From the NCBI RefSeq assembly GCF_001194135.2, contig NC_068982.1, positions 161,445,701 to 161,496,178 of the forward strand: a stretch of DNA of 50,478 bases, written 5' to 3'. The translations under genes and the position numbers were made by a program. This document shows, piece by piece, positions 1,512-40,623 of the stretch. A model generated the notes under the pieces. It saw only the letters and a program-made list of their open reading frames with translations, was not told where the DNA came from and ran no database searches. Positions within the stretch are counted from its first letter, which is position 1; each line of letters opens with the position of its first letter. The stretch is from Octopus bimaculoides (lineage: Eukaryota).

Positions 1512-2970
1512 GTAGGTGATAGAAAATTAATAATTCTTTAACTATTCACAAATTTCCGCCGATGCTTTAGAGAGTTTTTAATTTTTTTTTTACCTGCGTT
1601 CAATTACTCTCTTTTTGCTATTTCATCTCACCTTGCCATCTGTTTATTTTTCTCAAGTAGTGTTTTGCAGGATGTTTTTGCTGAATTGATTTAAGAAAAA
1701 GATTCGCGTCAGTTGATAATGGCGCTTTTTAGCTAAACTCTCACTGCCTTCCTTGTTCACATAGAAATCTTGCATGCAACTTTGTTCATTTACATATACC
1801 TGCTTCATTTATTCTGTTTAGACTGTCTAGCAATATACATTTCTAGCATAGACCGAGGTTTTTCGTTTAACTTCGTAGGAGATTTTTAAAAACGTATATA
1901 AATAGTTACAAAATATGAAGACATGTAAATATGTGTTCATGTGTGTTATATGTAAATATGTGTATATTTTTATATAAATTTACATATTGTGTTGCTTTTA
2001 GTCTTACTGTAGGTTCTTCTTTCTCTTCATAACTATTCATAATTTATTCATTTGTAAAATAAAAGTGGCTGGTGGGGGTTTTGATATTTAGGCCATGCAA
2101 GCAGTCTTGTATACAGATGTTGCTGTTATGTATCGCTTTGGTTGAAATTTGCAACATCATTTCGAGATACTCTATATATGTATGTGTGTGCGCGCGTGTA
2201 TATCCCATTTAACTGCGGTCCTGTTCTTTTTTTCCCATTGATATCTATCCGTTATATTCATAGGATATATCTATAATATGTATTTATAAGTGTGCGTGTT
2301 TAACTGTGTTCGTTGCGCGTCATACCTCCTACATCTTAGCTTCTTCCTCCTCCCACGTATGTTTATTTCCTCCTACCCGTTCTTTTCGACCTCCTCCTGT
2401 CACTACTACTATCACAACTACGACGTTGTACAAGTTGCTAATTTACATAAATCTACTCTCTGCACTCCCTATTGGTCAGATCTTGGCACCATCATTGTTT
2501 TCCTCTCAACCAGCCCTGAATCTTTGAATGCACGTTTTGCTGTCTTAATTAATAGCAACACGGTAAGAAATGATGCTTTTTTCCCTTGATTGTATATTTC
2601 TTTATGGTCTGACAGATTGGCTTGAGCATTTTTCTGACTGCAAACAATGAAAATAACGTCTGCTGTCCATCAGTATAGTGCTGAAATGACGTCAAAATGT
2701 GTGTCATTACGAAAGGTCATCTGCTGATTAGTATTCAAAATGGCTACTAGTCACGCTTGTTGCCGTCGTCGTTCTGTTTCACACGTACATACACCTCGAT
2801 CTAGTTATCTGTCTGTCTTCTCCCTTGCTAATTCAATGTCTCAACATTACTAATTACCTTCGCTTTCATTTCATCTATTGTTATACTTTTCTTACTAATA
2901 CATACTTTCCCGCGATTTTGCTGATTTCACCACGAGCCAAAGAAGGGGCCGTTACGTTTTTCGCTCGATT

Positions 2971-9995: not shown

Positions 9996-10544
9996 CAGTC
10001 ACAAAGTTTATCAGTAGATTGTCCCTTAGGAATGCCTATCAATCTACTACCTATCAGAATAGCTAGTGTGTGAGTTGAAAGTTATACCTAATGAGATTTA
10101 AATTTCTGCTTTTCTAGTTGTATTTTGTATTTTAGTGGTTTATAACTTCAGAGATTAATAAAACTAACTTATATTGAAGATGGGATCACTTCTTGCTGGG
10201 AGGAGAGAACCTCTTTGATATTTTGTATATCTCTTGTAAAAACAGTCAATTTCACTTTTCCAATTGATAGCTGTTGATTTTTTCAAAATCCATGTTGAAA
10301 ACAATAAGCTAATTCAAGAGCTCTGTTCTTTTATAATTTTCAAGTTGTTTTTTCTTTGGCAATTTAAATTGTATGTTTGATGCATTGGTTGCAGTGCTGT
10401 TCCATGATTTAAGATTTGTGTGGTAAATTTTAGTGAAACATTTAATAAAATGATATTTCTGATAAGAGTAATAGTAAGGAGTTATTGTTTTCTTCTTTCT
10501 CATTCCCATTGAAGGCAAAATGGTGAAAGCAGAATTAGTAGTAT

Positions 10545-10925
10545 GGCATGTGCTGGTGCCATGTAAAAAGCGCTAGCACCAGCATCACGTAAAAAGTACT
10601 TGCGCCAGCGTCACATAAAAAGTACTTGCGCCAGCATCACATAAAAAGTACTTGTGCCAGCGTCACATAAAAAGTACTTGCGCCGGCGTCACATAAAAAG
10701 TACTTACTCCAGTGTCACATAAAAAGTACTTGCGCCAGCATCACATAAAAAACACTCATACTGGTGCCTCACAAAAGGCACTTGTGCTAGTGCCATGTAA
10801 AAGCACCCAGCACATTGTTAAGTGATTGATGTTAGAAAGGGCATCCAGCCATAGAGATCAGACTGATGGAGCCTGGGCAGCTCTCCATGAAAACAGCATG
10901 GAAAACAGACGTTGAATGATGATGA
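10545..10925 (+). mobile_element. RTE-type 3' end with expanded 26-bp tandem array (10583-10790)
   Basis: Six near-identical units CRTCACATAAAAAGTACTTGCGCCAG plus two degenerate units, then GGGCATCCAGC...AGCATGGAAA...(GAT)n tail. Confidence 0.75.
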
Positions 10926-13827: not shown

Positions 13828-14579
13828 AAAGCTTAAAGAATAAAATAGAACACCAGAACTTGGAAAGCATGAAACTTTGTTTTAGTTCATTTTTTTTTTT
13901 ACTGTAGTGAAGTTTGCCTTTTATTCTGCTAGTGTTGACAAAATTAGTATCAGCTACGTAATAGAGTTGACTGTATCATCTCCTCATTAAAGAGTATGTT
14001 TGTATTAGATATGATGATTTAAATGGAAAGTTATGTGCTGATGTTGAACTTTTTAATTATTTCACTTATCAGTTGAATGTAAGACATTTTACAGAATAAA
14101 GTGAATTATGCAATATTTGTAGAAGAGTGATGGTGTTTATATAGGTGACTGAGAAATGCAACATATATGATTTAGATATATGGTATAGAAATGTGATGGT
14201 GCCATGTAAATTACATCGAAATCAGATAATGTCAGGGAGGTTGCTGAGTAAAATTGATCACTGCATGATGCATTTTGTGGTTGTAAATAATAATCTGTGT
14301 AGTATAATGTCAAAGCATAGGATCAGAACAAATGATGAGACCTTCATATATAGGCAGATGTGTTGAAGCATACAAAAATTATGGTGAGGATGGTGTAGCT
14401 ATACAGATATGATGTGCTTTGTTATTGTTAGGAAGTTTCCTTTAAAGTTTATGTAGGTGATGGTATAGTGTAGAAATGGCTTCGTCAACATCATTTATAA
14501 TTAAAATAAATTTCTTTCTAATAACTGCATGTTGTTATTAAAAATATTTATTTTCTTATTTCCAGCTTTATATTGCACC

Positions 14580-14911
14580 ATGCCAGCCATCAAACTCAAG
14601 AGAGTGACAGCAGAATACCTTGCTGAAAAGACTGCACAACAATCTAAAGCAGCTGCTGCAGCAAGCACAGCAGCATCCACTGCAACACCATCTGCAGCAG
14701 ATGAAGATGCTTCAAACCGATCTGAATCCAGTACAGCAGCAGCTACTCCCACTAAAACAGACACAAAGAATAAAGCCAAGCAGCCTACTACCACTGAGAC
14801 AGCGAAATCAGGTGGAGCTGGGTCAAAGATTCTTTCCAAATTAGATGATACAGTTTTGACAGAAAAACGTAAAAGAAATGTTCCTGCTGCTGAGCTCAAG
14901 TTGATGGAATG
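14580..14911 (+). CDS. HP1BP3: Coding exon 1 (exon starts 14566 after TTTCCAG): Ala/Thr/Ser-rich disordered N-terminus, KRKR basic motif, start of winged helix
   Basis: Acceptor AG 14564-14565; strong Kozak GCACC-ATG; MPAIKLKRV...ELKLME(W); donor TG|GTTTGT, phase 2. Confidence 0.85.
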
Positions 14912-15962
14912 GTTTGTCTTTTAATATTTCTTAATTTGAGAATGTTTGGTGGTAGAATTTAATAGAATGCTGGCCAGAGAGATTTCTTATATTTTGCTAC
15001 ATTCTTTTTCTTTCTGATGATATTAACATTTCGTTTTTATTCATTTGAGTTCATCAAAATATACCAATAGCAGATTCAATGTTGTTGTTGTTGGCACTCC
15101 GTCGCTTACAACGTCGAGGGTTCCAGTTGATCCAATCAACGGAACAGCCTGTTCGTGAAATTAGCGTGCAAGTGGCTGAGCACTCCACAGACACGTGTAC
15201 CTTTAACGCAGTTCTTGGGGATATTCAGCGTGACACAGTGTGACAAAGCTGGCCCCTTTGAATTACAGGTACAACGAAAACAGGAAGAAAGAGTGAGAGA
15301 AAGTTGTGGTGAAAGAGTACAGCAAGGTTCGCCACCATCCCCTGCCGGAGCCTCGAGGAGCTTTAGGTGTTTTCGCTCAATAAACACTCACAACGCCCGG
15401 TCTAGGAATCGAAACCGCGATCCTATGACTGCGAGTCTGCTGCCCTAACCACTGGGCCATTGCACCGCCACCAGATTCAATGTAATATACCACTAATACA
15501 TTTGTGGCCTCATACTAATGTAAGCAATGAAAATTTCCACATTTTCATTGTTAATTATACAACAAATTATTCTGTAACCAATCCTTATTTTAATATATAT
15601 TATTAGTAACATCTATTTTCCTCTACATTTAATTTGTTTAAGTTTTTGACATGCCTATAGTTCTCAAATTTTACTAAAACTTCTGAATTCTTTATTTTGT
15701 ATCTTTCTTATTTGATATCAAGCTATATATTTCACTGCAGTTATAGTTTTATGTTTTACACTAATTTTTCATTTTAGGCTTGATGATAACTTTGAAGAGC
15801 GAGACAGTACATCTATTTCAATGTTAATACTCTATGATTACTATGCCGAAACATGTCAGTTAGATGCATCCAAAGTTGTGGATATTCCTAACTTTAAAAA
15901 GGTAATAATTTGACTAATTTCTTAAATATCTAAATATATGTCTGAGGTGAGTTGGTAATAAG

Positions 15963-15994
<32 letters not shown>

Positions 15995-18900
15995 GCTACT
16001 GATCTCATTTTCATAGTAGAAACATTTAAAAAAATCTACACCATGTTTTGATCAGGTAACCTCCAATTGTCATCAGGTTCTTATTAGTGGAAGTATTCAT
16101 TGTTCCACCCATGCTAGCAAGGAAGGTGGATGTTATACTATGATGAAGTAGTAACTTTTACTTCTAAGTTAAGTCTAATGTCCTTTTTCTCTAGGTCACT
16201 AATGCATATATTTGTATAATATAAATGTATTGAAAAATCTTTCCTCTCTGAAGACGAGGTTTACTGTTTATCAATTTATGTTTACTGTAAAAAATGAGGT
16301 TTACTATTTACTAAGTTAGTTACTTGGAAGTGGATTCTGTTATACTTTATTATTGTCACCTATTTAACAATTCTACATTAGAGTATCTACACTGCCAATT
16401 TAATCCTAGATTTTCTTGATCTACATCAACAATTCATCTTATTAATTTTATTTAATTTCTCTTTATTTTTACACAATACTTTAATTCTTTATCAAATTTG
16501 GTGTATTGCTTTGACTAATATTTGAAGAATTATATGTACTTGACTACTTTGTAATACTTCAAGTAATGTTCTATATGTAACCCTTGACTATCCTTGAAAA
16601 CACAAGCTTTTTTTTATTTTGTATTAAGCCATGCATATTGACAGATTATACATAATCTAATGACTCTGTTCCTAAGAATTGAAAGATCATTGCGTAATAC
16701 AGTAAATATTACTGTTAGAAATCTTAGCTGAAATATGAAAGTCATTGATGGTTTATGATATATCAATATATGATTCATGTGAAGATATATTATATATCAC
16801 AGCTATAGAAGTTGGTGTCATCTGAACTTAACACACATGACAGATAAACCATTATTACTCTGTTTCTATACAATCAATACATTAGGTATCTTATACCATT
16901 ATGTATAAATTAGGTAAGTTTCATTACCTAATTTTAACATTTAAGAGTTTCTTACTATTTGGTTTAATGATCTATATATAGTTGTATGTTACTACTAGGT
17001 TAATAGTTTATATAAACATAAACTGGAGTATTTTTCTAGTTCAATGGCTTACATGTATGATAATGGTGTGTACTTGATTAACTTTGTATTTTACTTCTAG
17101 CATCACCAAATTAGATTATTTAAAACGCTTTGTTTATATTTGATAAGTATGATTTTTATATGGAATGTCTTACCTATATGATAAATTAATCAATGAATAA
17201 TTAATATTTCAAATGTCTAGATTGTGCGCCAGAAATTTGGAAAAGGTATTGGCATCAAAGAAACTTCGGCTTATAAAGGTTTGTTAAAAGAAAAGAAACC
17301 AAAGAAAAAACCAACAGTGCAAGCTGAATCATTGCGATTAAAAATGAAAGACATTATTGATGAAGCTCTGAAAGAGTCAGGAAATCCTGTATCCTTTTAT
17401 TTCTGTCTTTTCATTCATTCATATATTCCTGTTTTACAAAACTTTTTGTGAATCAAACTGAGCAAACATATTTCATTTAATGAAACAGTAGAATCCAAGG
17501 AAGTTAATGATGTTGTCAAATAGGAAATAAAAAGAAGTTTACAAAGTGGAATAAGTTAGTTTGCTGTGAAGAGGAAAAACTTGAAATTGTGATTAGTTAA
17601 CACTTTAATAGCTTAAGAACCTGCAAGCTGTATGTATTGGTTATTGCTGGGTGTTTTTACAGGAGTACTGTATGGCTGTTCTTTGTTACACGTTACACAT
17701 CTGTGGCAAGTGTAGTTAGTAATTTATAGCACTGAGACAGGTATATAGTTGACAAATCATAGTACTGAGACACATGATAGTTATTAAGTTATATTGTACA
17801 GTGATGCTTATACAACTACAACATGAAAAGTTATTAGATCATACTATGACATATGTATGCTTTATTAAGTTGTAGAAAGTTGACGCAGATATATGAAATT
17901 TTGTTTGCCATAAAAATGTCATAGAAACAAGAATAATTATTTCACTGAAGAGACTATTATTATAGCTACTTACTTAACTTTGATGATTGAGCAAGTGCTG
18001 TTAACTTCAGTATTATTGTAATATATATTTGGGCATGATTTGTGGGAGATGTGATTGCTATTTTTAGCAGATTGTGCAACTACACAAATATATTCCCTCA
18101 AAAAAGCCCAAAGCAGGAAGTGATGACTGCAGTTGACACTAAGTCAAGTGAAAGTTGTTGCAAGTGGTATCTAAAAGCATATTATAGATTTCTCTCACTG
18201 AGAGCTTATTGTTTAATCCTGCTGTGTCTGCTACCTAGTTGCTGTCTTCACCACAATAGTATTTTTGTAGTACCTGTTGACTGAGTCAAAACTGTGATGC
18301 AGCTGTGTTGCTTCAAATGAGCCCTTATCTTTTTCTGTATTTATAAGTAGATTGTCCATAGTTATAACAATAACTAGATTGTTCATTTTTCTCAAAGTTG
18401 GCTGTGATACAGTTTCAATACTTGTTTTTAAGCTTTCCCCTTTTTCATATTAATGACTCTTTGGAACCAACATGAACACCATCAATTTTTATCATTACTC
18501 AGTATTTTGTGTTTGGTTGACAAAAAAAAATAATACTGTAAATGGAGCTAACTTTCCCCAAGCTGGCACTGTTTCTGCTGTGGAGGGGTGGGGCATATGT
18601 TGCTTTGGTGGGAACATTGTAAAAGGAATTATATGAAGGATGAAGATTAAATAATGAATTAAGTTAAAAGGTTACCAATAATACCAAAGTAATATGAATC
18701 ATTGATTATATCAAACATGGTTGTTATACACTGTCAGTTTATTTGTGGTTTTACTTAACAAAGTGGTTCAGAAAAAAGGCGTTCGTTTTCATTGGTTGAA
18801 ACAGTATATTGGGGCAAAATATCCTGCCCTCCGGGTTGATTTAAAACCAGGCCTTCTAAAAGTTGCTCTTGAGCGAGGTGTTCGATTTGGTTCCGTTCAA

Positions 18901-21900
18901 TTGGTAAGTGATTTATTCTTTCCTACTTCTCATCCCTCAATTCTTGTTCTTCACTATACTCACCCCCACCCATTCATTTCTGATCTCTAACAATCTATTA
19001 CTCACCCTATTCTTGCAATTTCTACTTTGTTCTCCTGTTCCCACTACTTTTACTCACCTTGTACCTTGAGAGTCCACCCCAACACCTCATCACCATTATT
19101 TTTTATCTCTTTCCATCTCTATCCTAGGCACTCCCACTCTTTTCTTTTATGTGAGGAACTATGTAGTTCCTTTACAGCAAGAAACCTGTTCTTCTCTGAC
19201 TCCATCGCTTAGGCTTTACCCTTTTATCTCCTAGCATAAAGCTGCTTCCCTGTCTACTGTAGTCCCATTCAGTTGAAAGGGATCTTATTTTTGCAAGCTA
19301 CATGGCAATCTCTTTAGTGCTGGTACCATAAAAACCTCTCGTTATGTGCTTAAATGTGATTAGTATTAGCCAGGGGACCCTATTCTAAGTTCAAATCCTA
19401 ATAGACCTGATTTAACTTTCATGTTTCAGAGTTTATAAAATAATACTATAATATACTGGGAGTTAATTCAATTCTTTGAAGTTAGGTTCTTTTTATGTTG
19501 ATGAGTATGTATTTGATTATCAGATGCAAACTGAAAATACATATTAGTTGGAATTATTTGAAATAAGCAGATGAACTGGGAAGATAGCAAAGTGACCAAT
19601 GATATGTTGTGAAAGGTGACTGTTATTGTATGTATAGTAATAATTACAAAGTAAAGGAATAAGGAGTTGTTAAAAACAGTAAGGTACTAGACTTAATGTG
19701 TTGAAGTATTTTGTCTGGTTCTTAACATACAAATTCCATTCTGCCTTTCATTGATTTGATCAGGTCTTGTTTGCACTCCTCTCCTCTCAAAGTACCATGC
19801 AGTACAATGTGTCTGTGAAGATATACTGAAGTGCATTTCATTAGTAAATGGGAAGTGTCTATAGATTACTTAGAGTTTGCCAATAGAATGAGTGACCTCA
19901 GTTTAATCGAAGCTAGGGAGCCTCATGTAGATCAAATCCCACTGCCCATGCATGTCTATCTCTTTACTTGTGGGCACAGGCATGGGTTAGAAGTTCACTT
20001 CACGAGTATACTGTTTTGGGTTAAATCACATTGTACTGCATGGTACTTTGAGAAAGTGCCTTTTACCATAATCTTTGGGTCAACCAATGTTGTGTCAGAG
20101 ATAACTGGATGGTAGAATTAATCTTTAACCCAGTTTAACATCATTGCTTGTCCCTTGAGTATCTTGTAGAGTCCTTTCTGTTACGAGCATTCTGGCTAGC
20201 TGTCTGGACTAACAAATAACTTCCTCCTCTTACTAAGCCATTAAAGTAAAAACTTCTTGTTAAGTGTTGACAAGAATAGCCTGGGAAAAGTTCAGGAAAC
20301 TCCTACCTCTGCTGGCAACTAAGGGCCTTTCGCTTAGAGTGAAAGGTAGACTGTATGATGCATGTGTGTGAACTGCTATGCTACATGGCAGTGAAACATG
20401 TACCATGCCTGTTGAGGACATGCATAGGCTTGAAAGAAATTAAGCTAGTATGATCTGTTGGATGTGTAATGTCAGTGTGCATACACGACAAAGTGTAAGC
20501 GCACTGAGAGAAAAGTTGGACAAAGAAGCATCAAATGTGGTGTGCAAGAGAGGCGTCTGTGCTGGTATGGTCATGTTATGTTTGAAAGAAGACAGCTGTG
20601 TGAGGAAGTGCCACTCCCTAACTGTAGAAGGAACCTGTGGAAGAGGTAGACCCAGGAAGACATGAGATGAGGTGGTGAAGCATGACCTTCAAACATTGGG
20701 CCTCACAGAGGCAATGACGGGAGACCGGGACCTTTAGAGATATGCTGTGATTGAGAAAACCTGGCAACTAAAGTGAGACCGCAGCCACTCATGTCCGGCC
20801 CTGTTAAAAATACCCCTGATGCGTCAGGCAATATGATATGCTTGAGAAGACCTGTTGAGTCAAGTAAAACCAATATCGTAGCTGTGGCCAGTTTCCTCTG
20901 ACTGGCTCCCATGCCAGTGGTACATAAAAAGCACCATCCAAATGTGATCGATGCCAGGTCCACCTGACTGGCTCTTGTACTGGTGGGCATGTAAAAAGCA
21001 CCAACCATTCGTGGGCAATGCCAGTACCTACAGAATGGCTCTTATGCCGGTGGCGCATAAAAAGCACCATCTGAACGTGATCGATGCCAGGCCCACCTGA
21101 CTGACTCCCGTGCTGGTGGCACGTAAAAAGCACCCACTACATTCTCGGATTGGTTGGCGTTAGGAAGGGCATCCAGCTGTAGAAACATTGCCAGATCAGA
21201 TTGGAGCCTGGTGCAGCCACTGGCTCTCCAGACCTCAGTCAAACTGTCCAACCCATGCCAGCATGGAAAGTGGACGTCAGACGATGACGATGATGATGAT
21301 GATGATCTGGACTATTTATGGGTTTTGCCTACAGAATTAAATTAGTTGGAATTCTGTTTGTATGAGTTAATTTATTCAAGTGGTTTGTCTCAAATATGAG
21401 AGTGACCAGTATCTGAACTATTAAGATATCAGTTAAAGAGTTGGTGTTTCAAATACTAATAATAGCAAGACCACTCAGAGAGCGCAAATCTCCACCAAGG
21501 CAACACCAACGTCCTCTCAACAATTAGCCAGAGATGCTTTTTTAAAATGAGAATATCTGAAATAAACTAAACTGCTCTCACCAATGAGAATACTAAAAAT
21601 GAACCTGACCGCTCTCAAAAATTAAGTAAAAAAACAGGAAAAATAATCCAGAATCCTTCTCTGGTACTGGATCAATCCCAAAATCTAATCAGTTAGTGCC
21701 AGTCACGAGGCCTAACATCCCTGAAAGTTTCATCCGAATCCATCCAGCGGTTCTTGAGATATCTTGTCAACAGACAAACAAACAAACAAACACAACTGAA
21801 AACAATACCTCCACTTTCGCTAAGGCAGAGGTAATAATTCTAATTTTGAGGAGAGTGAACAGGTCAATTACATCGAAGCCTAATACATGACAAGTACTTT

Positions 21901-24900
21901 TTATCGACACTAATGAAGGCCTTAGTGGGATTTGAACTCAGAATGTGAAGAGTTGAAACAAATGCCATAAAGCATACTTTCAAATACTCTAATGATTCTG
22001 TGAGCTTGCTGGCTAATCAGTTTCAAGTTTTGGCATAAAGCCAGCAATTTTAGGGAAAGAAGTTAGTCAATTGCATAGGTCCCTTCTTTTCGACCCTGAA
22101 AAGATGAATGACAAAGAAGAAATGTGGCTAAGCATTTTGTTTGATGCACTAAGGATAATCTTCATCATTATTTAGCATCTGCTTTCCATGCTGGTATGGG
22201 TTAGACAGTTTGACTGAAACTTGTAAGCTGGAGAGCTACACCAAGTCCCTATCTGATTTGCATGGCTTCTACAGATAGATGCCCTTCCTAATGCCAACCA
22301 CTCCAAGAATGTAATGAGTGCTTTTTACATGCCACCAGCATGAGGTGCCAGTTACGTGGCACCAGCATCAGCTTGGTTTGACGAGTCTTCTCAAGCACAG
22401 CATATCACCAAAGGTCTCAGTCACTTATCACCTCTGTGAGGCCTAACATTCAAAGGGCGTTTTTTGTGTGCCTGTGACTATGGTTTCACTTGGCTTGACA
22501 AGTCTTCTCAAACATGGCATATCACCAAAGGTCTTGATCACTTGTCATTGCTTCCATGAGGCTCAATGTTTGAAGATCATGTTTTCCTGGATCTACTTCT
22601 TCCACAGGTTCCCTCCACAGTTTATAATAATAATAATAATAACAATAACAAAACTCCAGGCTAGACTGGATAATGAATGACAACCTCCACTGTTACCTTT
22701 ATGTGCCAGTGTATGACATTTAACACTGAATATCAATCTCCTGTATACATTTATATATGTTTATAATATGTAACTGATCTACACTGTTACCTGAGTATTT
22801 ATATAACTTCTGTACTGAATCCTTCATTTTCAGGTTCGAGGAATTGGTTATTGTGGCTTCTATCGTCTGCCCTTGCCAGATAGCTCCGAAGAAGCCAAAG
22901 TTGTCAAATCTAAGAAAAAAGAAAGTGGATCCGAAGATAAAAAAAGTGATGGTACTGCTGATGAAACTGCTAAATCTGAAGTAATTAAAACAGTTTCAAT
23001 TTTATTCATTTCTAATCTTTCAATTGATAGAATTAGCTGAGTGGATTAGCATCAGAGATTGTTGCATTGTCACTTTGGACAGGACAGTATACAGATAGAA
23101 AGTATGGGGAACAAGCTTCAGGTTGCCTGGGAATGTTGTTTGCAAATGACTGGTGTCTTATCCCAAGATTTATCCTCTTGTTCATTTGATGCTAATGAAT
23201 GTGAACTGAGGGCACAATCAGCAACTTGCTGTATTCCATCATGGTTAATTAGTGCAATCAATCCTTTAAGATTGTTAAAAAAAACCTTTTGTGTATAGAG
23301 ACATCCACATTTCCATCCAACTACAGTTATTGTTTAGCCCTAATACTGGTCAGTTCTAATTTAAAAAAAAAACTGATCTAAGGCATTCCAGCTATGACCA
23401 TATGATTTTTTTTAGGGCATAATGTATCAAGATTATATTACCTTCTTTTTTAAGATATTTTAGTTGCTATTTCTAGTAGATCGTGTAGCCATAGAAGTAC
23501 CCTCATTGGCTCTTTTGTTTTCCAGTAGATGAGAACAATTTAGTGGTAATAGTTTAGCAAATGTTGTGGTTGCTGAATAAACTGAATGTGTTGATATTGT
23601 TGTATCTTTTGTACAGTGATTACCATGTAAAAATATATGCTCTTTGTAAACAATTTTTAGTCCTAATTTCTCTAGGGAAAAACATGAATGTTACAGTTTA
23701 ATTCTGATCCCCTTTAAACTTGAATCCTTGTATTCATGTAAAAGTATCTATTTTCGCTCATGTAGCAGGTACCACAGAACAAATGTCTTTGCTTCACATA
23801 CTTTTTTAACAATGATTTGGATAGAGTTGTGACCATTTCATACATTCTCTCATAATTTCATTTCCCCCTCCCCTTCAAAACAAAAGCATTATAGGTCATC
23901 AAGGAAGTTTCTACATATGTTCTTGACCTGCTAGAAATAGCAGCTAAATCTCCTAAAAATCAAACTACCATATTCTAAAAAAATTACATTAGATAAATTA
24001 GCTTTACATCTACTAGTCTGATTAAAATACAGAAATGATCTCAGCTGAATGCCTTTACACGTTGCTCTGCTGAATAAAGACTGACCAAGGATTAAACAGC
24101 AACATCAGAAGAAAATAAAATACCTAAGTGCCTCTGAGAAATCTGTGAAAAATACTTGAACAGTGGTTGAATGACAGACATACTACAGTTGTCATCCAAG
24201 CTTATCCATTCATATCCCACTTCGGCTGTTACATTAACTCATTAGACAAAATATTCAACTCTGCTTCAGGATTAATGCATTTTCTTTCATTTAGCCTAGT
24301 CACTGGGAAATTTTGGGGGGAGTAATGTGAACACATTAGCACTTTTGGTATCTGTGAGACTATTGTCTCACACAACAGAATACAATTTGTGTGTTTCTTT
24401 GTTGCTTTTACTGAGCCACCCAACACAGTCCATGGTGTAAAGTACCTGAGACCATTTTATTTATTTTGTGTTGTCCAACATTTTTTAATAATCTTTTCAC
24501 TCCACCTCTTTTTTTCTTTTTTTGTTCTACTCCTTTTTTAAAATTATATAAGCCTCAGATTTAGTAATAGCAAATCCAAATTATTTTGAAATACAACTAA
24601 GAGGTGGACTTTGAACTGGCTGTTTCAATTTCCAAGTGTCTAAGCAATCAAACAGCAGTACTGAAAGCAGTGATTTCTAGAAAGAAAATGAAACAAAGGC
24701 CTTTAAAATATTTCTCTTCCAAAATTTTGAGAACAAACTGCATCCCATCAGTCATCATCATGATTAAAACCCATGGATTATTTACTTTGGTTCATTCCAG
24801 AACTAATTGCTGCACAAAATGTAAACAAAGGGAAGAAGATAAACTGCATGAAATTAATTATTTTTGTCATAAATGGCATTTAGTAAGTAAGCTATATAAT

Positions 24901-27900
24901 ATCATATTGACTAATAACTCATTTTATGCAGTGATATTTCAACAAAATTTAAATGACGTTCAGGTTTTACCTGTAATTAAAGTAGATTTGAGACAAAAAT
25001 TCTGGAAAAGATTTATGTTAGAACCTGTTGCTAAGTCATTTGAAACATTCGGGTGTATTTTAGTTAACAATATAGTAACAAAAGGGTTAGGATAGAAGTT
25101 TTTGAAAGATGTTTTATTTTGTTTGTTATTTTAATATCAGGATGCTGGTGAGAACGGTAGTGATGAGAAAAAAGATGATGGCGATAAAGCCACTGATGAA
25201 ACTGAGAAAAAGACCAGGAAGAGAAAGTCCACAAAAGATGATTCTAGTAAGACAGCTAAAAAGTCAAGGAAAGCGAAGAAAGGTGATTAAATTGGTGTTT
25301 TTTATAAAGTCTAAGGTGTGTTTAATGTCAGTGACCAAATAACATGGTTTCTGATAATCATGCTGGATTTCATTTTAGAAGTTTTAAGACACAGTTTCAA
25401 TCCCACTAACACCTTGGACATGTGTAGCCTTGGGTTAACCAAAGTCTTGTGAGTTAAATTTAGTAAAGACAAGCCCATTGGATGTAGGCGGGGTTGCAGA
25501 ATCGGTGCATCATATAAAAATAACTTGTGGTATTCACTTACTTCCCTTTAAGTCCAAGTCAACTTTGCCTGTCTTCCAACCAATCAACAAAAACCCTTGT
25601 AGGTGGTACTTCAGTGTTGCTGCAGTCTAACGACTGAAAGCAGTCAATGCATAAAAGAATGTGAACTCATGGTTTCCATATTTATAAATGTGTACATGTT
25701 CTGGTAACTAATACACTCAGCTATTTCTTCATTTGATTCCTTAAAGATATTGCTCCATTTATGTAGTTACATTTCCTCCTGTTACATTTCATTTTGGATT
25801 TGATGAACATGTTTGTTCTTCAACTTAGCTGCCAAAACTTCTGTTTTATTATCAAACTGTCCTAGAGTTTTAAATATTTGGCGGTAACCAAGATGTCGGA
25901 GCACTGCTGGAATTGACACATCTTTCATTCCTTTTTGGTGGTTCATGTCTTTGGAATGAAATGTTGCCAGAATAATTTATATTTAAACAAATGCACCAAT
26001 AGAGAGCAGTGTCTCTATTAAACTAAATAATTATTTAAAACTGGAATAAGCTCAATCGTTGAGGTGATAAATAGTTCCAGTACTTCTATCTAAATATATA
26101 ACAGAAGACAAACTCATTAATTTGTTGATAGTTGCCATTTGTTACTGTTTTGTTTCTAATCCATGAAAACCTTTACATATATGTGTGTCTCATGCACATC
26201 ACAATGTAAATCAGAACTGAAATAAATTAAAATATATTTACACACATATTTGTATAATGTTAATTAGACTATTAAAGGTTAGAGTGCTGATATATTTGTA
26301 GCAGTATCTTCACTGATTAATAGTTTTGAGTTAAAATATGTTGTCTTAAAAGAGCAGCATATGTTTAGTGTATAACTAATAGCATAATTCTGCTGTGCAG
26401 GAAAAAAGAAAAAGAAGCCAAAACATAGTACAGAGCTGAAGATTGAAGACACGTTTCCGCTAGCCATTACTTTCATGTCAGAACCTAAAGAAGCATCAGT
26501 GTCTCGGATTAAGCGTTATATCCAAGACTTTTATCCAGATGTCAATGCTGAAGTGAGGTAAGATTAATTAATTTAATGAAATTATTAAAAGTTTTTCCCA
26601 GTTGTATTTCTTTGCAGTTACAGCAAGTTCAAGAGAATAAGTATGATTCTTGTCAGTCAAGATTGACTAGGTTTGATTGATTTTTCAATTGACTTTTAAG
26701 TTTAACTTGAGCTGTGAATTTCCCTTGGAAAAACAAGAAGTTACAACATCCCATTTTCCCTGCTCCCTAAAAGTGTAAGAAAATAATATCCTAATAAATA
26801 TTGATACATTTCAAAATGAAAGCTTAATTAGTTTATTTTGAAATGTATCAATATTTATTTGGATATTATTTTCCTTGTTTCACTGTTATGGTAATTTCTT
26901 GATATTATCGATAATATTTGGATATTGTTGGAGCAAACATTTTCTGTATCTATCAGCTGTATTGTAAGGTTAAAGTTTTTTCTTAATCAAATATGTTTTA
27001 CCTTGAGGCACAATTCAACAGCCCCTATAAAAATACATTAGAATAACCTAAGTGTGAAATAAAAGAATGTATGTGTGTCTTGACAAGAAGTAATTTTGTT
27101 TTTCAAAATATTGTTGAATGTCTAAAACATCTGCAGTTATAAGGTTTACAGTTATTTTTTCCATGTTAATGTATTTAGCTTTTCATATTTGGTTGTTTGG
27201 AGTTAAATTTCAATAATCTTCCGGAGCTATTACAGAAGGCTTGAGCTTGTGGTCCTGTATTCATAAATGCAGCACTTTGATTCATTAAAATCCTGAAATT
27301 ATCATTATCATCATCATTCTTTGACATCCTTTTTCCAAGCTGGCATGGGTTGGACAGTTTGACAGGACCTGGCCAGCCAGAGAGTTGTCTAGGCTCCAAT
27401 TGTCTGTTTTGGGCATGGTTTTTCACAGCTGGATGCCCTTCCTATCACTAACCACTTTACAGTGTGTATTGGGTGATCCTTACGTGCCACCAGCACAGGT
27501 GCACTTTGCATAGTACCAGCATGAGTGCCCCCTGTGTGGCACTGGCACCTGCAAGACAAAAATCTCTCAGCTAGGAGAGGGAGTTGGGGTATGGTCGTAA
27601 AGGACTTGCCTGTATGTATGGATGGTCGCGATTTTACTTAGCTTAATGTTTCTTCTCAAATACAGCAAATCACCACAAATCCCAGTCTCTTGTCATCTCA
27701 GCAAGGTCCAACATCTGAAGATCCTTTCTCACCACTTCATCCCACATCTTCCTGGGTCTGCTCCTTCCACAGGTTCCCTCCACAAATTTTAGTTACAATA
27801 ATATTTCACAGATAATTAGATAACAAATGATAATTATGCCGTTTATTTCAAAGGCATATCAATAATGTGTAATATGTCTGCTTCTCCATGTAGGTGTGGG

Positions 27901-30080
27901 TTGGACAGGTCTTTTTTACAGTCAGGTGTCCTTCCTGATACCAACTCTTTTAGTTGTCCCTTGTGCTAGCATGGAAAAAGTGTTTATTCTAAAACTCAGG
28001 ATATACATGATCTATATATATATGTATGTGTTATTTGTTGTCAGGCTAAAGAAAGCTCTAGAAAAAGGTGTTGAGCGAGGATTATGGGAACAAGTGACTG
28101 GAACAGGAGCTTCTGGAACTTTCAGACTTCTTATTGATGAATTCAATCCTGGAAAATGTGAGTAAATAATTCAGACTTTATTTATCTGAGACTCTTTATA
28201 TCATTGTACTTTCTGATATAAAAGTTTTAAAAGTTGATATACTTTATTTAATATGTACATTTTATATATTGTTTCTATATGTATAGTCAGTTATCATACA
28301 GCTTTAACAAACTCTGGATAAAAATTGCCACAGCTATTTGCCAGAGTTTCAGCTGCAAAAATGAAATGTCAGAAATATAGATAATTTATGTATACAAGCC
28401 CAGTGTTTCTAATAAAATTACACTGCTTATGTGTTTCAATTAATTCTGAAAATAATCCTGAATTTAAAGAGATTTAGTAAATTAACTTTTTCATTATTAA
28501 GCTAGTGCTCGGAACATAATTTTAAAATAAAGTTCTTAAAATGAGCTGTTTTATACCCATAGTATATGGTAGATTTAGATTAAAAAAAGATTAACACTTT
28601 ATTTAATTGCTGAACTTGTTTCGGTGTGCAACTATCAAATATAATCAGTAATTTTTTTAATGTTTGTTGTTTATCATTGGGCCAGCTGTTTTCAAGCAGA
28701 TCTGTGGTCAGAGCATTCAAGTTGTGACCATTATATCATAGGCCTACATAGGTATGGTTGAAGGGAATTTGACTGCTATTTCTAGCAAGGTTGTGAATAA
28801 CCACATGGAGGTTCTTTTCTTGACTTGGAGTGTGCATCATGTTAATTATTTTGATGCTACACATCTAAGTTCAATCAGAACAACAAATGTTTGGTGTTTC
28901 ACAGAACTAAGATATTCATTGATATATGAACTATATTTCTCTGTTGTTTAGTACCAGTTTAGCTCTGATTAGTTAAAAGCATTCCAGCCATGATCTCATG
29001 CTGCCTGTTTTTTAGACATATTGTATCTAGGACTACATTATACAATGTATCCTTCCTGTTTTTAAGACATAAGGATGTAGAGTGACTACAAGAAAGCACT
29101 TTTGTTCAATATAGTTTTAAAATTTTGTGTAGTAACACTGAGAGAAAATGCCTTCATGCAATGACTAAATCTCTGTTATTTTGTTTATCATCCAGGTGAA
29201 ACTGTGGAAGACATGGTATGTCTGGCAATTGTTGCTACTCATGAACCAAAACAAGCTTCTGCTCTGTTAATCAAGCGTTATGTGCAAGAGTTTCATCAAG
29301 ATTTCAACATTGAGACCCGACCACATCTGTTTAAGAATGCAATTAGTAGAGCTGTTAAGAAAAACATCATCAAGTAATTACTGTTTCTTTTCACTCTCTT
29401 CTATGTATACCTTTGTTGTGCTGTACTGCTGAATTGCATTCCATCTAATCTCTGTTCTGTATTGAAGTCATTTTGAAAGGTATGATTATTACAACTGCTA
29501 CTTTGTCAGTATAAGAAATGATGAAGTGGTCTGGGATACATGTGGTGTGTACTTGTGTATGGATGTGTGGATGCAGCATGGTTGAATTGTTAAGAAACTT
29601 GCTTCACAGTCATATAGATCACATAGTCTTATGATGAGTCTGCCTGAAAATATGTTGTAAGGAAATGTCTGTGCAATACCAACTCATTTACACCATAATT
29701 TAATGAGGATATTGTTCAGTTCATTGAACAACATCAAAATTCAATGTTGAAACCAGTGAAAATCCTTTTACTTTTGCTATAATTAATGTAGACTTATAAA
29801 ATTATGTTTTTCGTTGTTTATCGTTTAATATACTAAAAGGTTATTTTATTTCCTCTTTCTAAGGCAATTATCTGGTATTGGTGCCAGTGGTACATTTCAA
29901 CTATTACTACAATATGGACCGTCCCCTGCCATGTTGGCTGGAAATCAAGAGGCAGATGATGTTGGCCAGGGTAGCAGTGACGATGATGAACCAGCTGAAC
30001 AGTATTATGTCCGACCAACCAAGTCTCGTGGCCGAGGGCGCGGTGTTAAAATGATTATTGGCAAGAAAGCCAAGCGATGA
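14580..30080 (+). CDS. HP1BP3: HP1BP3-like chromatin protein (RFX-type winged helix + 3 x H15 linker-histone domains), 10 coding exons, 569 aa; join(14580..14911,15778..15901,17221..17388,18772..18903,22834..22980,25141..25282,26401..26557,28045..28157,29196..29373,29864..30080)
   Basis: Manual splicing gives GT-AG introns with consistent phases (2,0,0,0,0,1,2,1,2) and 1710 nt with no internal stop. Three H15 repeats carry HP1BP3-type motifs (KIEDTFPLAITFMSEPKEAS; LWEQVTGTGASGTF; HEPKQAS; QLSGIGASGTFQL), followed by YGPSP and an acidic stretch, matching my recall of vertebrate HP1BP3. Orthology not verified by search. Confidence 0.88.
15083..15471 (-). mobile_element. Full-length tRNA-derived SINE with 12-bp TSD
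   Basis: Minus-strand head has A box TGGCCCAGTGG and B-box-like GGTTTCGATTCC; (CAA)n tail; TSD CAGATTCAATGT at 15071-15082 and 15472-15483. Confidence 0.9.
15778..15901 (+). CDS. HP1BP3: Coding exon 2: core of RFX-like winged helix
   Basis: TTTTAG acceptor; (W)LDDNFEERDSTSISMLILYDYYAETCQLDASKVVDIPNFKK; donor AAG|GTAATA. Confidence 0.85.
17221..17388 (+). CDS. HP1BP3: Coding exon 3: end of RFX-like domain, basic linker, start of H15-1
   Basis: TCTAG acceptor; IVRQKFGKG...KMKDIIDEALKESGNP; followed by U12-type donor GTATCCTTTT. Confidence 0.87.
17389..18771 (+). other. U12-type (minor spliceosome) GT-AG intron
   Basis: 5' SS GTATCCTTTT (consensus RTATCCTTT); branch site TTACTTAAC 18751-18759 just upstream of the CAG ending 18771; no polypyrimidine tract; exons join in frame (ESGNP|KKGV). 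Confidence 0.88.
18772..18903 (+). CDS. HP1BP3: Coding exon 4: H15-1 helices 2-3
   Basis: KKGVRFHWLKQYIGAKYPALRVDLKPGLLKVALERGVRFGSVQL; donor TTG|GTAAGT. Confidence 0.9.
20271..21306 (+). mobile_element. 5'-truncated RTE LINE (RT C-terminus, modular 3' UTR, (GAT)n tail)
   Basis: RIAWEKFRKLLPLLATKGLSLRVKGRLYDACV...MICWMCNVSV...GRGRPRKT with stops and frameshifts; similar to 39184-39918. Confidence 0.88.
21466..21836. mobile_element. Non-autonomous Helentron/HINE-like repeat (tentative)
   Basis: Degenerate subterminal IR (CTCCACCAAGG ... GGCAGAGGT), (AAAC)n microsatellite and 3' TACCTC...GAGGTA hairpin; classification from recalled family architecture. Confidence 0.4.
22163..22620 (-). mobile_element. 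RTE-type 3' fragment
   Basis: Reverse complement of the 20620-21306 type sequence; ends at TTCCACAGGTTCCCTCCACAG. Confidence 0.75.
22834..22980 (+). CDS. HP1BP3: Coding exon 5: H15-1 wing and charged linker
   Basis: TTTTCAG acceptor; VRGIGYCGFYRLPLPDSSEE...TAKSE; donor GAA|GTAATT. Confidence 0.87.
25141..25282 (+). CDS. HP1BP3: Coding exon 6: acidic/basic linker
   Basis: ATCAG acceptor; DAGENGSDEKK...KKSRKAKK(G); donor AAG|GTGATT, phase 1. Confidence 0.82.
26401..26557 (+). CDS. HP1BP3: Coding exon 7: H15-2 N-half
   Basis: GTGCAG acceptor; KKKKKPKHSTELKIEDTFPLAITFMSEPKEASVSRIKRYIQDFYPDVNAEV(R); donor AG|GTAAGA. Confidence 0.92.
27301..27784 (-). mobile_element. RTE-type 3' fragment
   Basis: (CAT)n tail, GGATGCCCTTCCTA core, ends at CTTCCTGGGTCTGCTCCTTCCACAGGTTCCCTCCACA. 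Confidence 0.8.
28045..28157 (+). CDS. HP1BP3: Coding exon 8: H15-2 C-half
   Basis: TGTCAG acceptor; LKKALEKGVERGLWEQVTGTGASGTFRLLIDEFNPGK; donor T|GTGAGT. Confidence 0.92.
29196..29373 (+). CDS. HP1BP3: Coding exon 9: H15-3 helices
   Basis: TCCAG acceptor; (C)ETVEDMVCLAIVATHEPKQASALLIKRYVQEFHQDFNIETRPHLFKNAISRAVKKNII(K); donor AA|GTAATT. Confidence 0.92.
29864..30080 (+). CDS. HP1BP3: Coding exon 10: H15-3 wing, acidic patch, short RG/basic tail, stop
   Basis: TTTCTAAG acceptor; QLSGIGASGTFQLLLQYGPSPAML...SSDDDEP...SRGRGRGVKMIIGKKAKR, TGA 30078-30080. Confidence 0.92.
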
Positions 30081-39183: not shown

Positions 39184-39918
39184 TGGCCATATTCTTTGTA
39201 GAAAAGGTGTAGGTAGAAACTCCATAAGATGTACCCAGTGTAAGCTATGGACACGATGTGCAGCAACATCAAAGAAAGATTAACCGAGAAGACAGCTTTT
39301 GTGTGCGACAGATGTACAGGGGCAATAAACACCACAGATGCTCAGAAAACAGATTTCATTACACTCCAGGGGGAGAAACTAGAAATAGTTGATAGCTTCC
39401 GCTACCTAGGTGACCAAGTTAGTAGTGGGGGTGGATGCTCAGAGAGTGTTACCACTAGAATAAGAATAGCCTGGGCAAGGTTTAGAAAGCTTCTACCCCT
39501 ACTGGTGACAAAAGGCCTCTTGCTCAGAGTGAAAGGTAGATTGTACGATGCATGTGTGCAAACTGCCATGCTTCACGGCAATGAAACATGGGCCATGACT
39601 GTCGAGGACATGTGTAGGCTCGAAAGAAATGAAGGTAGCATGATCCACTGGATGTGTAATGTCAGTGTGCACACACGACAGAGTGTAAGTGCCCTGAGAG
39701 AAATGTTGGACATAAGAAGCATCGGATGTGGCGTGCAAGAGAGATGTTTGCACTGGTATGGTCATGTACTATGGATGGATGAGGAGAGATGAGTGAAGAA
39801 GTGCCACTCCCAAACAGTTGAAGGAATCCGGAGTAGAGGTAGACCCAGGAAGACATGGGATGAGGTGGTCAAGCATGATCTTCGAACGTTGGGCCTCACA
39901 GAGGCAATGACGAAAGAC
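39184..39918 (+). mobile_element. RTE LINE ORF fragment (PHD-like finger + RT thumb/C-terminus), running into an assembly gap
   Basis: LEIVDSFRYLGD...TRIRIAWARFRKLLPLL...GRLYDACV...AMLHGNETW...RGRPRKTWDEVVKHD; gap 39919-40576. Confidence 0.88.
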
Positions 39919-40576
39919 NNNNNNNNNNNNNNNNNNNNNNNNNNNNNNNNNNNNNNNNNNNNNNNNNNNNNNNNNNNNNNNNNNNNNNNNNNNNNNNNNN
40001 NNNNNNNNNNNNNNNNNNNNNNNNNNNNNNNNNNNNNNNNNNNNNNNNNNNNNNNNNNNNNNNNNNNNNNNNNNNNNNNNNNNNNNNNNNNNNNNNNNNN
40101 NNNNNNNNNNNNNNNNNNNNNNNNNNNNNNNNNNNNNNNNNNNNNNNNNNNNNNNNNNNNNNNNNNNNNNNNNNNNNNNNNNNNNNNNNNNNNNNNNNNN
40201 NNNNNNNNNNNNNNNNNNNNNNNNNNNNNNNNNNNNNNNNNNNNNNNNNNNNNNNNNNNNNNNNNNNNNNNNNNNNNNNNNNNNNNNNNNNNNNNNNNNN
40301 NNNNNNNNNNNNNNNNNNNNNNNNNNNNNNNNNNNNNNNNNNNNNNNNNNNNNNNNNNNNNNNNNNNNNNNNNNNNNNNNNNNNNNNNNNNNNNNNNNNN
40401 NNNNNNNNNNNNNNNNNNNNNNNNNNNNNNNNNNNNNNNNNNNNNNNNNNNNNNNNNNNNNNNNNNNNNNNNNNNNNNNNNNNNNNNNNNNNNNNNNNNN
40501 NNNNNNNNNNNNNNNNNNNNNNNNNNNNNNNNNNNNNNNNNNNNNNNNNNNNNNNNNNNNNNNNNNNNNNNNNNNN
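39919..40576. other. Assembly gap (N run); a second small gap lies near 46705-46716 between (GT)n and (GA)n
   Basis: N characters. Confidence 0.99.
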
Positions 40577-40623
40577 AATTAGGGATAATTTCAAAAAGGA
40601 ATGAAAAATAAAAACATTTACCA

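Follow-up and report, generated by a model that had tools for sequence, protein, structure and literature searches.

The window analysed here is a 50,478-nucleotide stretch of AT-rich animal DNA from Octopus bimaculoides (NC_068982.1 positions 161,445,701–161,496,178), and it contains a gene for a heterochromatin protein 1-binding protein 3 (HP1BP3)-like protein in which an RFX-type winged helix precedes three linker-histone (H15) domains. A hand-built model places ten coding exons on the plus strand between positions 14580 and 30080, with GT-AG borders at all introns and a product of 569 amino acids (aa). NCBI lists the same sequence, with 100% identity from end to end, as [quoted passage not shown] (gene location GCA_001194135.2, CM046602.1). 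Pfam finds PF00538 (Linker_histone, H15) in three stretches with 129 bits, PF02257 (RFX_DNA_binding), and nothing else. We regard the identity of the protein and its RFX plus triple-H15 architecture as close to certain.

By sequence profile and predicted structure, the segment at aa ~103–174 shares its ancestry with the RFX DNA-binding domain and forms a winged helix of that type, though a divergent one. PF02257 scores 31.5 bits on the full protein and 35.7 bits on the isolated segment (E 2.8e-7 to 1.4e-8), above the family's gathering cut-off of 27 bits, and 17 of 17 diverse homologous segments match this family and no other in Pfam. A profile of 17 RFX-like segments (A1), searched against PDB sequences, gave RFX1 (1dp7, E 4e-5, 27.4 bits), RFX5 (8zjr, 1e-4, 26.1 bits) and ARID2 (7vdv and 7y8r, 3e-4 and 7e-4, 24.7 bits) as its sole significant matches. 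Aligned by hhalign to a profile of 20 canonical RFX domains (A4), A1 reached a probability of 98.65% and an E-value of 5e-16 over 62 columns. AlphaFold2, run from A1, predicted the topology H1-S1-H2-H3-S2-wing-S3 with a predicted local distance difference test (pLDDT) score of 82 and a predicted template modelling (pTM) score of 0.70; the helices fall at aa 103–115, 126–139 and 147–158, followed by S2, a hairpin and S3. The two best Foldseek matches of this model in the PDB are RFX1 (1dp7_P) and RFX5 (8zjr_M), with probability 1.00 and template modelling scores of 0.56–0.65. A Pfam score above threshold and a predicted winged-helix topology, the two marks of the RFX superfamily, are both present.

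An earlier note on this DNA had spliced three exons into a chromatin protein with four winged helices. The sequence reproduces its junctions (14911/15778 and 15901/17221) and its quoted peptide, and the joined product is the NCBI protein. The RFX-like consensus pattern that it had recognised agrees with the PF02257 score and with a shared core of W-L..N-[FY]-E, L-Y..Y...C and F-x-K. Its proposed profile and structure-prediction check of aa ~100–180 returned the PF02257 match and an AlphaFold2/Foldseek result favouring the RFX fold, and the union of RFX-type winged helix and three H15 domains in one protein is upheld by Pfam, profile-profile alignment, structure prediction with fold search, and transcripts of a related cephalopod.

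The RFX-like domain and H15 domain 1 (GD1) are joined by a lysine-rich linker of ~10 residues (KEKKPKKKP) that is short, conserved and encoded inside exon 3. A tandem model of the two shows both domains with confidence, low confidence in the linker (pLDDT 62–64), a pTM of 0.47 and no sign of a rigid two-domain unit. Because linker confidence and pTM are low, we picture the two as separate beads threaded on a basic string.

Distribution and age of the architecture

The RFX plus triple-H15 architecture occurs in ~35 proteins from three phyla. Searching 1.84 billion representative proteins by HMMER, A1 found 114 hits, and a local H15 scan of these placed the RFX-like domain at the same N-terminal position in every H15-containing one. 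The mollusc carriers are Octopus, Argonauta, Pecten, Mizuhopecten, Ylistrum, Haliotis, Patella, Elysia, Batillaria, Mya, Mercenaria, Mactra, Solemya and Tegillarca; the annelid carriers are Owenia fusiformis and Dimorphilus gyrociliatus; and the brachiopod carrier is Lingula anatina, whose database name is likewise HP1BP3. Further carriers belong to a "MPPKKSKAAR" type (P0019, P0023, P0045–47, P0051 and P0053). All named carriers are lophotrochozoan, and the 114 hits include no named carrier from elsewhere. Vertebrate HP1BP3 gave no match to A1 in this search, though the collection holds an eel (P0152) and a chimpanzee (P0167) sequence. The earlier note's suspicion of a lineage-specific protein fits this pattern. 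The ortholog survey that it outlined found the domain in molluscs and annelids; on the deuterostome side the survey covered vertebrate HP1BP3, where nothing matched.

The strongest hits of A1 outside the HP1BP3-like family are proteins with tandem RFX domains. These eight proteins, encoded on ENA contigs outside the window (P0035–P0037, P0039, P0040, P0043, P0044 and P0048), carry 3–5 RFX DNA-binding domains each, most with an intact RRLGGR wing. Their lengths are 570–1,089 aa, with seven of the eight at 867–1,089 aa. We know of no description of such multi-RFX-domain proteins.

In its degree of conservation the RFX-like domain is close to the H15 domains, and it is therefore constrained as a folded functional unit would be. 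It aligns nearly without gaps in 25 of 25 full-length mollusc homologues, including those for which only PF00538 is stored. Identity to octopus is 44–57% in most molluscs and 35% in Patella; the corresponding values are 44–71% for the H15 domains, 19–32% for the N-terminus and 20–29% for the inter-domain linker.

Searches from other parts of the protein did not widen the set of full-length relatives. A profile of H15 domains 2 and 3 (GD2–GD3; A2) returned fragments shorter than 300 aa, including the vertebrate sequences P0152 and P0167, and no full-length orthologues from other phyla; a full-length profile (A3) recovered the 32 proteins of the first homology search and no others. Neither search yielded sequences from deuterostome invertebrates or cnidarians.

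HP1BP3-like proteins that have no RFX-like domain are abundant in marine metatranscriptome and metagenome sources (P0028–P0032). They carry a vertebrate-like K-K-x-I-P-x-W-A-[TS]-L (IPxWATLS) motif before GD1 and have a short GD1–GD2 linker.

Read-through fragments from other genomes show that the introns inside the domain are conserved. Open reading frame fragments of exon-2 type on genomic contigs (P0054, P0056, P0061–64, P0070, P0079 and P0125) begin at the residue after the tryptophan, always have Arg before that start (ag/G read as AGG; slashes mark splice borders) and stop at the exon 2/3 border, with Val, from a GTN donor, after it. Since the preceding Arg is ag/G read as AGG, the Trp codon is split in phase 2 in other species as well. 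Fragments of exon-3 type (P0065, P0086, P0102, P0118, P0126, P0129, P0130 and P0132) begin after Gln (cAG) and end GNP/VS, and the border after position 17388 is conserved in the same way. Because the fragments share their exon borders, both intra-domain introns keep their position and phase in many genomes. The earlier note had proposed comparing these introns with those of RFX genes: a fragment of a canonical RFX gene (P0131) has no intron at the Trp but ends AAFGK/V, which coincides with the exon 2/3 border. The shared border is a single hint of an intron held in common with RFX genes.

An older origin than the named carriers suggest would place the RFX-like domain in the bilaterian HP1BP3 ancestor, followed by loss in vertebrates and other lineages. 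The vertebrate N-terminus would then be a relic of it. Garfinkel et al. (PMC4344522) describe that region as ~100 unstructured, Glu-rich residues, in agreement with the disorder that the earlier note ascribed to it; no RFX-like match was found in vertebrate HP1BP3. Retention of architecture and intron positions across three phyla does mean that the arrangement is old, and the exon border of P0131 after FGK hints at an ancient gene-level origin, not recent shuffling. Yet an exhaustive profile search produced no named carrier beyond lophotrochozoans among its 114 hits, the vertebrate HP1BP3 sequences in the collection went unmatched, and marine samples contain HP1BP3-like proteins that have the vertebrate-like IPxWATLS motif and no RFX-like domain (P0028–P0032). 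We consider a bilaterian origin possible and rather unlikely; it would be compatible with the function favoured below.

On whether the architecture has been described, which the earlier note did not know, literature and databases differ. Searches combining HP1BP3 with RFX, HP1BP3 with invertebrates, RFX with H15 or linker histone, and RFX with ARID2 or Rsc9 retrieved no paper describing it. The stored Pfam hits of the octopus, Argonauta, Elysia and several transcript-derived proteins already list PF02257 together with PF00538, so the domain pair is visible to anyone viewing automated annotation.

Divergence from RFX factors and proposed function

The wing of the RFX-like domain is shortened and has lost its canonical arginines. 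According to hhalign and to pairwise alignment alike, four residues are missing where the wing starts: canonical F-P-x-x-x-T-R-R-L-G-T-R-G-x-S-K-Y stands opposite F-G-K-(gap)-G-I-G-I-K-E-T-S-A-Y, exactly where the earlier note had described a reduced RRLGxRG wing. The motif R[RK][LVIC]GxR is present in nearly all canonical RFX hits of A1 and in none of the H15-containing ones. In RFX1 the RRLGxR arginines reportedly belong to the wing with which the protein reads the major groove of the X-box (Gajiwala et al. 2000). Canonical RFX proteins match A1 over columns ~15–66 (H1 to H3), HP1BP3-like proteins over columns 1–88. The latter share a wing signature of their own, KFGK-x-FG-x-KE-x-S-x-YKG, an invariant K160 and S168, and an invariant KRKR nine residues before H1.

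Identity and charge also set the domain apart. The octopus domain is 16–35% identical to the 20 canonical RFX domains, which average ~50% among themselves. Chu et al. 2010 (PMC2873420) define RFX factors by at least 40% identity in the DNA-binding domain together with all nine DNA-contact residues; the octopus maximum of 35% lies below this bound, and in place of a full-length wing its -GIGIKE aligns to RRLGTRG. On identity and wing we reject a true RFX transcription factor. In the HP1BP3-like family the domain core has a mean net charge of -2.7, divided into -5.2 for H1–H2 and +2.5 for H3 plus wing, against +4.55 for canonical RFX domains, whose H3 plus wing carries +6.6.

We favour, with considerable confidence, an HP1BP3-like linker-histone-related protein whose divergent RFX-type domain serves as a non-X-box auxiliary module. 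X-box reading seems improbable because the wing has become shorter and no longer carries its arginines, the core has an acidic charge and the degree of identity falls below the RFX-factor range; the charge comparison (-2.7 versus +4.55) argues against X-box binding indirectly. Among the alternatives considered here, an auxiliary chromatin-contact or docking mechanism appears reasonably likely. The RFX-like domain would form a fourth chromatin-contact module on a flexible basic tether, beside the trivalent H15 module. In such an arrangement KRKR, helix 3 and the basic linker may touch DNA non-specifically, and the acidic H1–H2 face with the conserved wing may dock a partner, candidates being the surface of the nucleosome, histone tails, a remodeller and basic segments of the protein itself. 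We slightly favour docking over non-specific DNA contact. The missing wing arginines and the negative net charge are consistent with what the earlier note proposed, a module for targeting or docking whose sequence specificity would be low or changed. According to PMC4344522, the N- and C-terminal regions of vertebrate HP1BP3 both affect chromatin binding in fluorescence recovery after photobleaching; since its termini have this influence, an N-terminal module acting in chromatin residence is plausible.

Several observations weigh against this account. The Foldseek E-values are weak (0.026 and 0.06), though RFX1 and RFX5 rank first and the remaining matches have E > 2. The Pfam match covers positions 4–55 of the 79 in PF02257; it stops at position 55, and homology of the wing therefore rests on hhalign and the structural model. 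In 16 of 17 sequences helix 3 has a Lys or Arg where RFX domains have the lysine of "FGK", and the segments on either side of the domain are strongly basic, so appreciable DNA binding, perhaps with a new specificity, is possible. The lophotrochozoan restriction counts named hits, and several carriers are transcript assemblies that bear no taxon name. Finally, transcript support comes from a related cephalopod and the NCBI gene model, not from inspected O. bimaculoides junction reads.

If the domain were a working sequence-specific reader, of the X-box or of a new motif, it would steer the triple linker-histone module to defined sites in the genome, as a "targeted linker histone". Homology to a bona fide DNA-binding domain gives this idea its starting point, and the basic residue kept in helix 3, a wing with its own strongly conserved signature and the basic arms on both flanks (KRKR and KEKKPKKKP) are all features that such a reader might have; that RFX5 can engage DNA on a nucleosome is evident, moreover, from the title of PDB 8zjr. 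The wing, however, is ~4 residues short and has none of the RRLGxR arginines, the identity of 16–35% falls under the 40% and nine-contact rule (PMC2873420), and the net charge is -2.7 against +4.6. We judge sequence-specific reading improbable. Equally improbable is a lophotrochozoan "guided linker histone" in which the re-tooled wing, with its invariant signature (KFGK-FG-KE-S-YKG), recognises a DNA motif, DNA shape or nucleosome feature. Were it real, a trivalent H1-like compaction module would be placed at defined loci, a mode of targeted chromatin compaction that has no counterpart in vertebrate HP1BP3 or H1.

Exons, transcripts and other features of the window

The RFX-like domain is spliced into the H15 messenger RNA. 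Exons 1–3 join by GT-AG splicing (14580–14911, 15778–15901 and 17221–17388) to encode MEWLDDNFEERDSTSISMLILYDYYAETCQLDASKVVDIPNFKKIVRQKFGKGIGIKETSAYKGL, aa 109–173, with the ATG of M109 at 14904 and the last base of L173 at 17283. The exon 1/2 junction reads ATG GAA TG/gtttgt at 14911 and ttttag/G CTT GAT at 15778; the exon 2/3 junction reads AAA AAG/gtaata at 15901 and tctag/ATT GTG CGC at 17221. A phase-2 intron divides the Trp111 codon as TG/G, and a phase-0 intron follows F-x-K in helix 3. Skipping exon 2 would give TG/A, an immediate stop, which makes that exon obligatory for the H15-encoding frame. A related-cephalopod protein (P0003; 566 aa, 78% identical to the octopus protein) has the RFX-like and H15 parts in one uninterrupted open reading frame on intronless contigs of 2.5–2.7 kilobases (kb) from at least 10 independent SRA-run assemblies, and one such complementary DNA (cDNA) contig (L002) aligns to the window in blocks matching all ten coding exons.

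These transcripts also bear on whether the RFX-like exons could be an annotation artefact, that is, a separate upstream gene or an optional cassette. O. bimaculoides itself has a computational gene model only, and a 12-kb first intron with further long introns leaves room for alternative promoters. We nevertheless rejected a gene-fusion artefact, now very improbable, in view of the transcript contigs, the conservation between phyla and the phases of the exons: both parts lie in uninterrupted frames on transcript-sized contigs from at least 10 runs, collinear with the window exons; ~35 proteins in three phyla share the architecture; loss of the 124-nucleotide exon 2 runs straight into TGA; and exon 3 encodes the wing and GD1 helix 1 together, across a short, conserved linker. 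Chance or compositional similarity in a segment that is not an RFX-type winged helix could draw on the partial Pfam match (4–55 of 79) and the Foldseek E-values of 0.03–0.06, and is just as hard to credit beside the hhalign result (98.65%, E 5e-16), the 17 of 17 PF02257 matches with no other family, the restriction of significant PDB sequence matches to RFX1, RFX5 and ARID2, and a predicted topology whose two top folds are RFX.

The gene probably begins ~12 kb upstream of its start codon. Bases 10–67 of contig L002 match window positions 2471–2529 at 80% identity, within what is probably a non-coding first exon. At ~2472, on the 5' edge of that exon, lies an ATTGG (reverse CCAAT). The promoter should lie just upstream of the exon. 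The acceptor ahead of the first coding exon is ttccag/ at 14565.

Table 1. Coordinates of the HP1BP3-like gene in the window (position 1 is the first base of the stretch; slashes mark splice borders)
Feature	Position	Strand	Evidence
Probable non-coding first exon (5' untranslated region), start approximate	2471..2563	+	related-cephalopod cDNA match; donor acacg/gtaaga at 2563/2564
Coding exon 1: start codon, disordered N-terminus aa 1–94, KRKR aa 96–99, first half of RFX-like helix 1; ends in Trp111 codon	14580..14911	+	
Conserved RFX-like module aa 95–183 (alignment A1), genomic span including introns	14862..17313	+	Pfam, PDB profile search, hhalign, AlphaFold2 and Foldseek
Coding exon 2 (124 nucleotides): remainder of helix 1, strand 1, helix 2, first half of helix 3 of RFX-like domain (aa 111–152)	15778..15901	+	
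Coding exon 3: remainder of helix 3, shortened wing GKGIGIKETSAYKGL, basic linker KEKKPKKKP, helix 1 of GD1 (aa 153–208)	17221..17388	+	
Coding exon 4: body of H15 domain 1 (GD1)	18772..18903	+	
Coding exon 5: end of GD1 VRGIGYCGFYRLP and start of acidic/basic linker	22834..22980	+	
Coding exon 6: K/E/D-rich low-complexity linker	25141..25282	+	
Coding exon 7: first half of H15 domain 2 (GD2)	26401..26557	+	
Coding exon 8: second half of GD2	28045..28157	+	
Coding exon 9: first part of H15 domain 3 (GD3)	29196..29373	+	
Coding exon 10: end of GD3, PSPAMLAG motif, acidic patch, short basic tail, stop codon	29864..30080	+	

Repeats occupy parts of the introns and flanks. Two copies of an interspersed repeat, ~84% identical, lie at 20272–20725 (intron 4) and 39247–39918; the downstream copy has a 181-aa open reading frame (39247–39792) that matches no Pfam family, and an assembly gap, written as Ns, follows this copy directly at ~39920–40580. 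Intron 1 is AT-rich and contains a GC-rich block of ~380 bp at 15090–15470 that looks like an inserted repeat. Transfer RNA (ARAGORN) and Rfam scans of the window found nothing, so this block has no recognisable tRNA-derived head of a short interspersed nuclear element. Similar peptide strings occur in open reading frames of introns 4 and 7 (21154–21345, plus strand; 22172–22306 and 27175–27426, minus strand), with LSNPCQ.GK followed by D-rich runs and LALGRAS.CR, which suggests that a further short interspersed element is present several times, on either strand. Pfam matched no family in three intronic or flanking open reading frames. Positions 1–~600 are low-complexity, TA/CA-rich and microsatellite-like, and a 26-nucleotide tandem repeat of ~8 copies lies at 10523–10808.

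Comparison with known systems

Orthology to vertebrate HP1BP3 (HP1-BP74) is likely on sequence similarity. The octopus protein has the three consecutive H15 domains of the HP1BP3 family, in the same order; its GD2–GD3 region is 40–41% identical to, and collinear with, the eel (E 1e-33) and chimpanzee (2e-29) fragments, and a PSP..L motif follows GD3 in both. The NCBI name and this collinear similarity are what the assignment draws on. The proteins differ at both ends: the chimpanzee fragment passes from KKVKKTIPSWATLS almost straight into GD1, unlike the octopus protein, and the octopus basic C-terminal tail is very short. In PMC4344522, HP1BP3 is treated as a vertebrate innovation of the H1 family with a disordered N-terminus. 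The present family shows that triple-H15 proteins are older than that vertebrates-only view, with an N-terminus that is, on our evidence, a folded and conserved RFX-type winged helix across a super-phylum of molluscs, annelids and brachiopods.

The octopus protein shows no sign of the motif that gives HP1BP3 its name. In mouse, according to PMC4344522, a PxVxL-type motif between GD1 and GD2 binds the HP1 chromoshadow domain, and V257E abolishes heterochromatin enrichment. The chimpanzee sequence P0167 has PQVKL, which we compared with octopus aa 267–362 (exons 22834–22980, 25141–25282 and 26401–26557); P.V.[LIMV] occurs nowhere in the octopus, Pecten or Haliotis proteins, a search that a degenerate motif could escape. 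Because a PxVxL-type motif is absent, "HP1-binding" is in the octopus a name transferred by homology, which counsels caution about such transfers.

Linker histones H1 and H5 share with the octopus protein H15 globular domains (PF00538) and lysine-rich segments. They have a single globular domain and a long basic C-terminal tail, against three H15 domains and an RFX-type domain in the octopus. The RFX-like domain (aa 95–185) offers a handle on how multivalent linker-histone-like proteins are positioned in lophotrochozoan chromatin. Our result describes an architecture; it neither establishes a new mechanism nor settles an open question.

RFX1–8 (PF02257; 1DP7) share the winged-helix core described above. 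The octopus domain differs from them in its missing RRLGxR, shorter wing and acidic rather than basic core, and the protein has none of their dimerisation, B or C domains, being fused to H15 domains instead.

ARID2 of PBAF and Rsc9 of RSC likewise carry a divergent RFX-type winged helix, and they too are chromatin proteins outside the RFX factors. The ARID2 domain is 29% identical to RFX1, a value within the octopus range, and keeps 5 of 9 contact residues (PMC2873420); it lies after the ARID and ARM repeats and before the zinc fingers (PMC9170682). The match of A1 to 7vdv/7y8r extends into the N-terminally prolonged helix 1 of ARID2, and the octopus family resembles ARID2 no more closely than it does RFX1 or RFX5. 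Partner domains differ, with ARID, ARM and zinc fingers on one side and three H15 domains on the other; finding only PF02257 and PF00538 in the octopus protein, Pfam places it outside the ARID2/Rsc9 type. In function the octopus domain most nearly resembles, by analogy, these winged helices, which sit within remodeller complexes (PMC9170682; PMC6959994). The octopus family provides a third setting for the RFX fold, beside RFX transcription factors and the ARID2/Rsc9 remodeller subunits, and a natural experiment on the role of a wing-truncated RFX domain.

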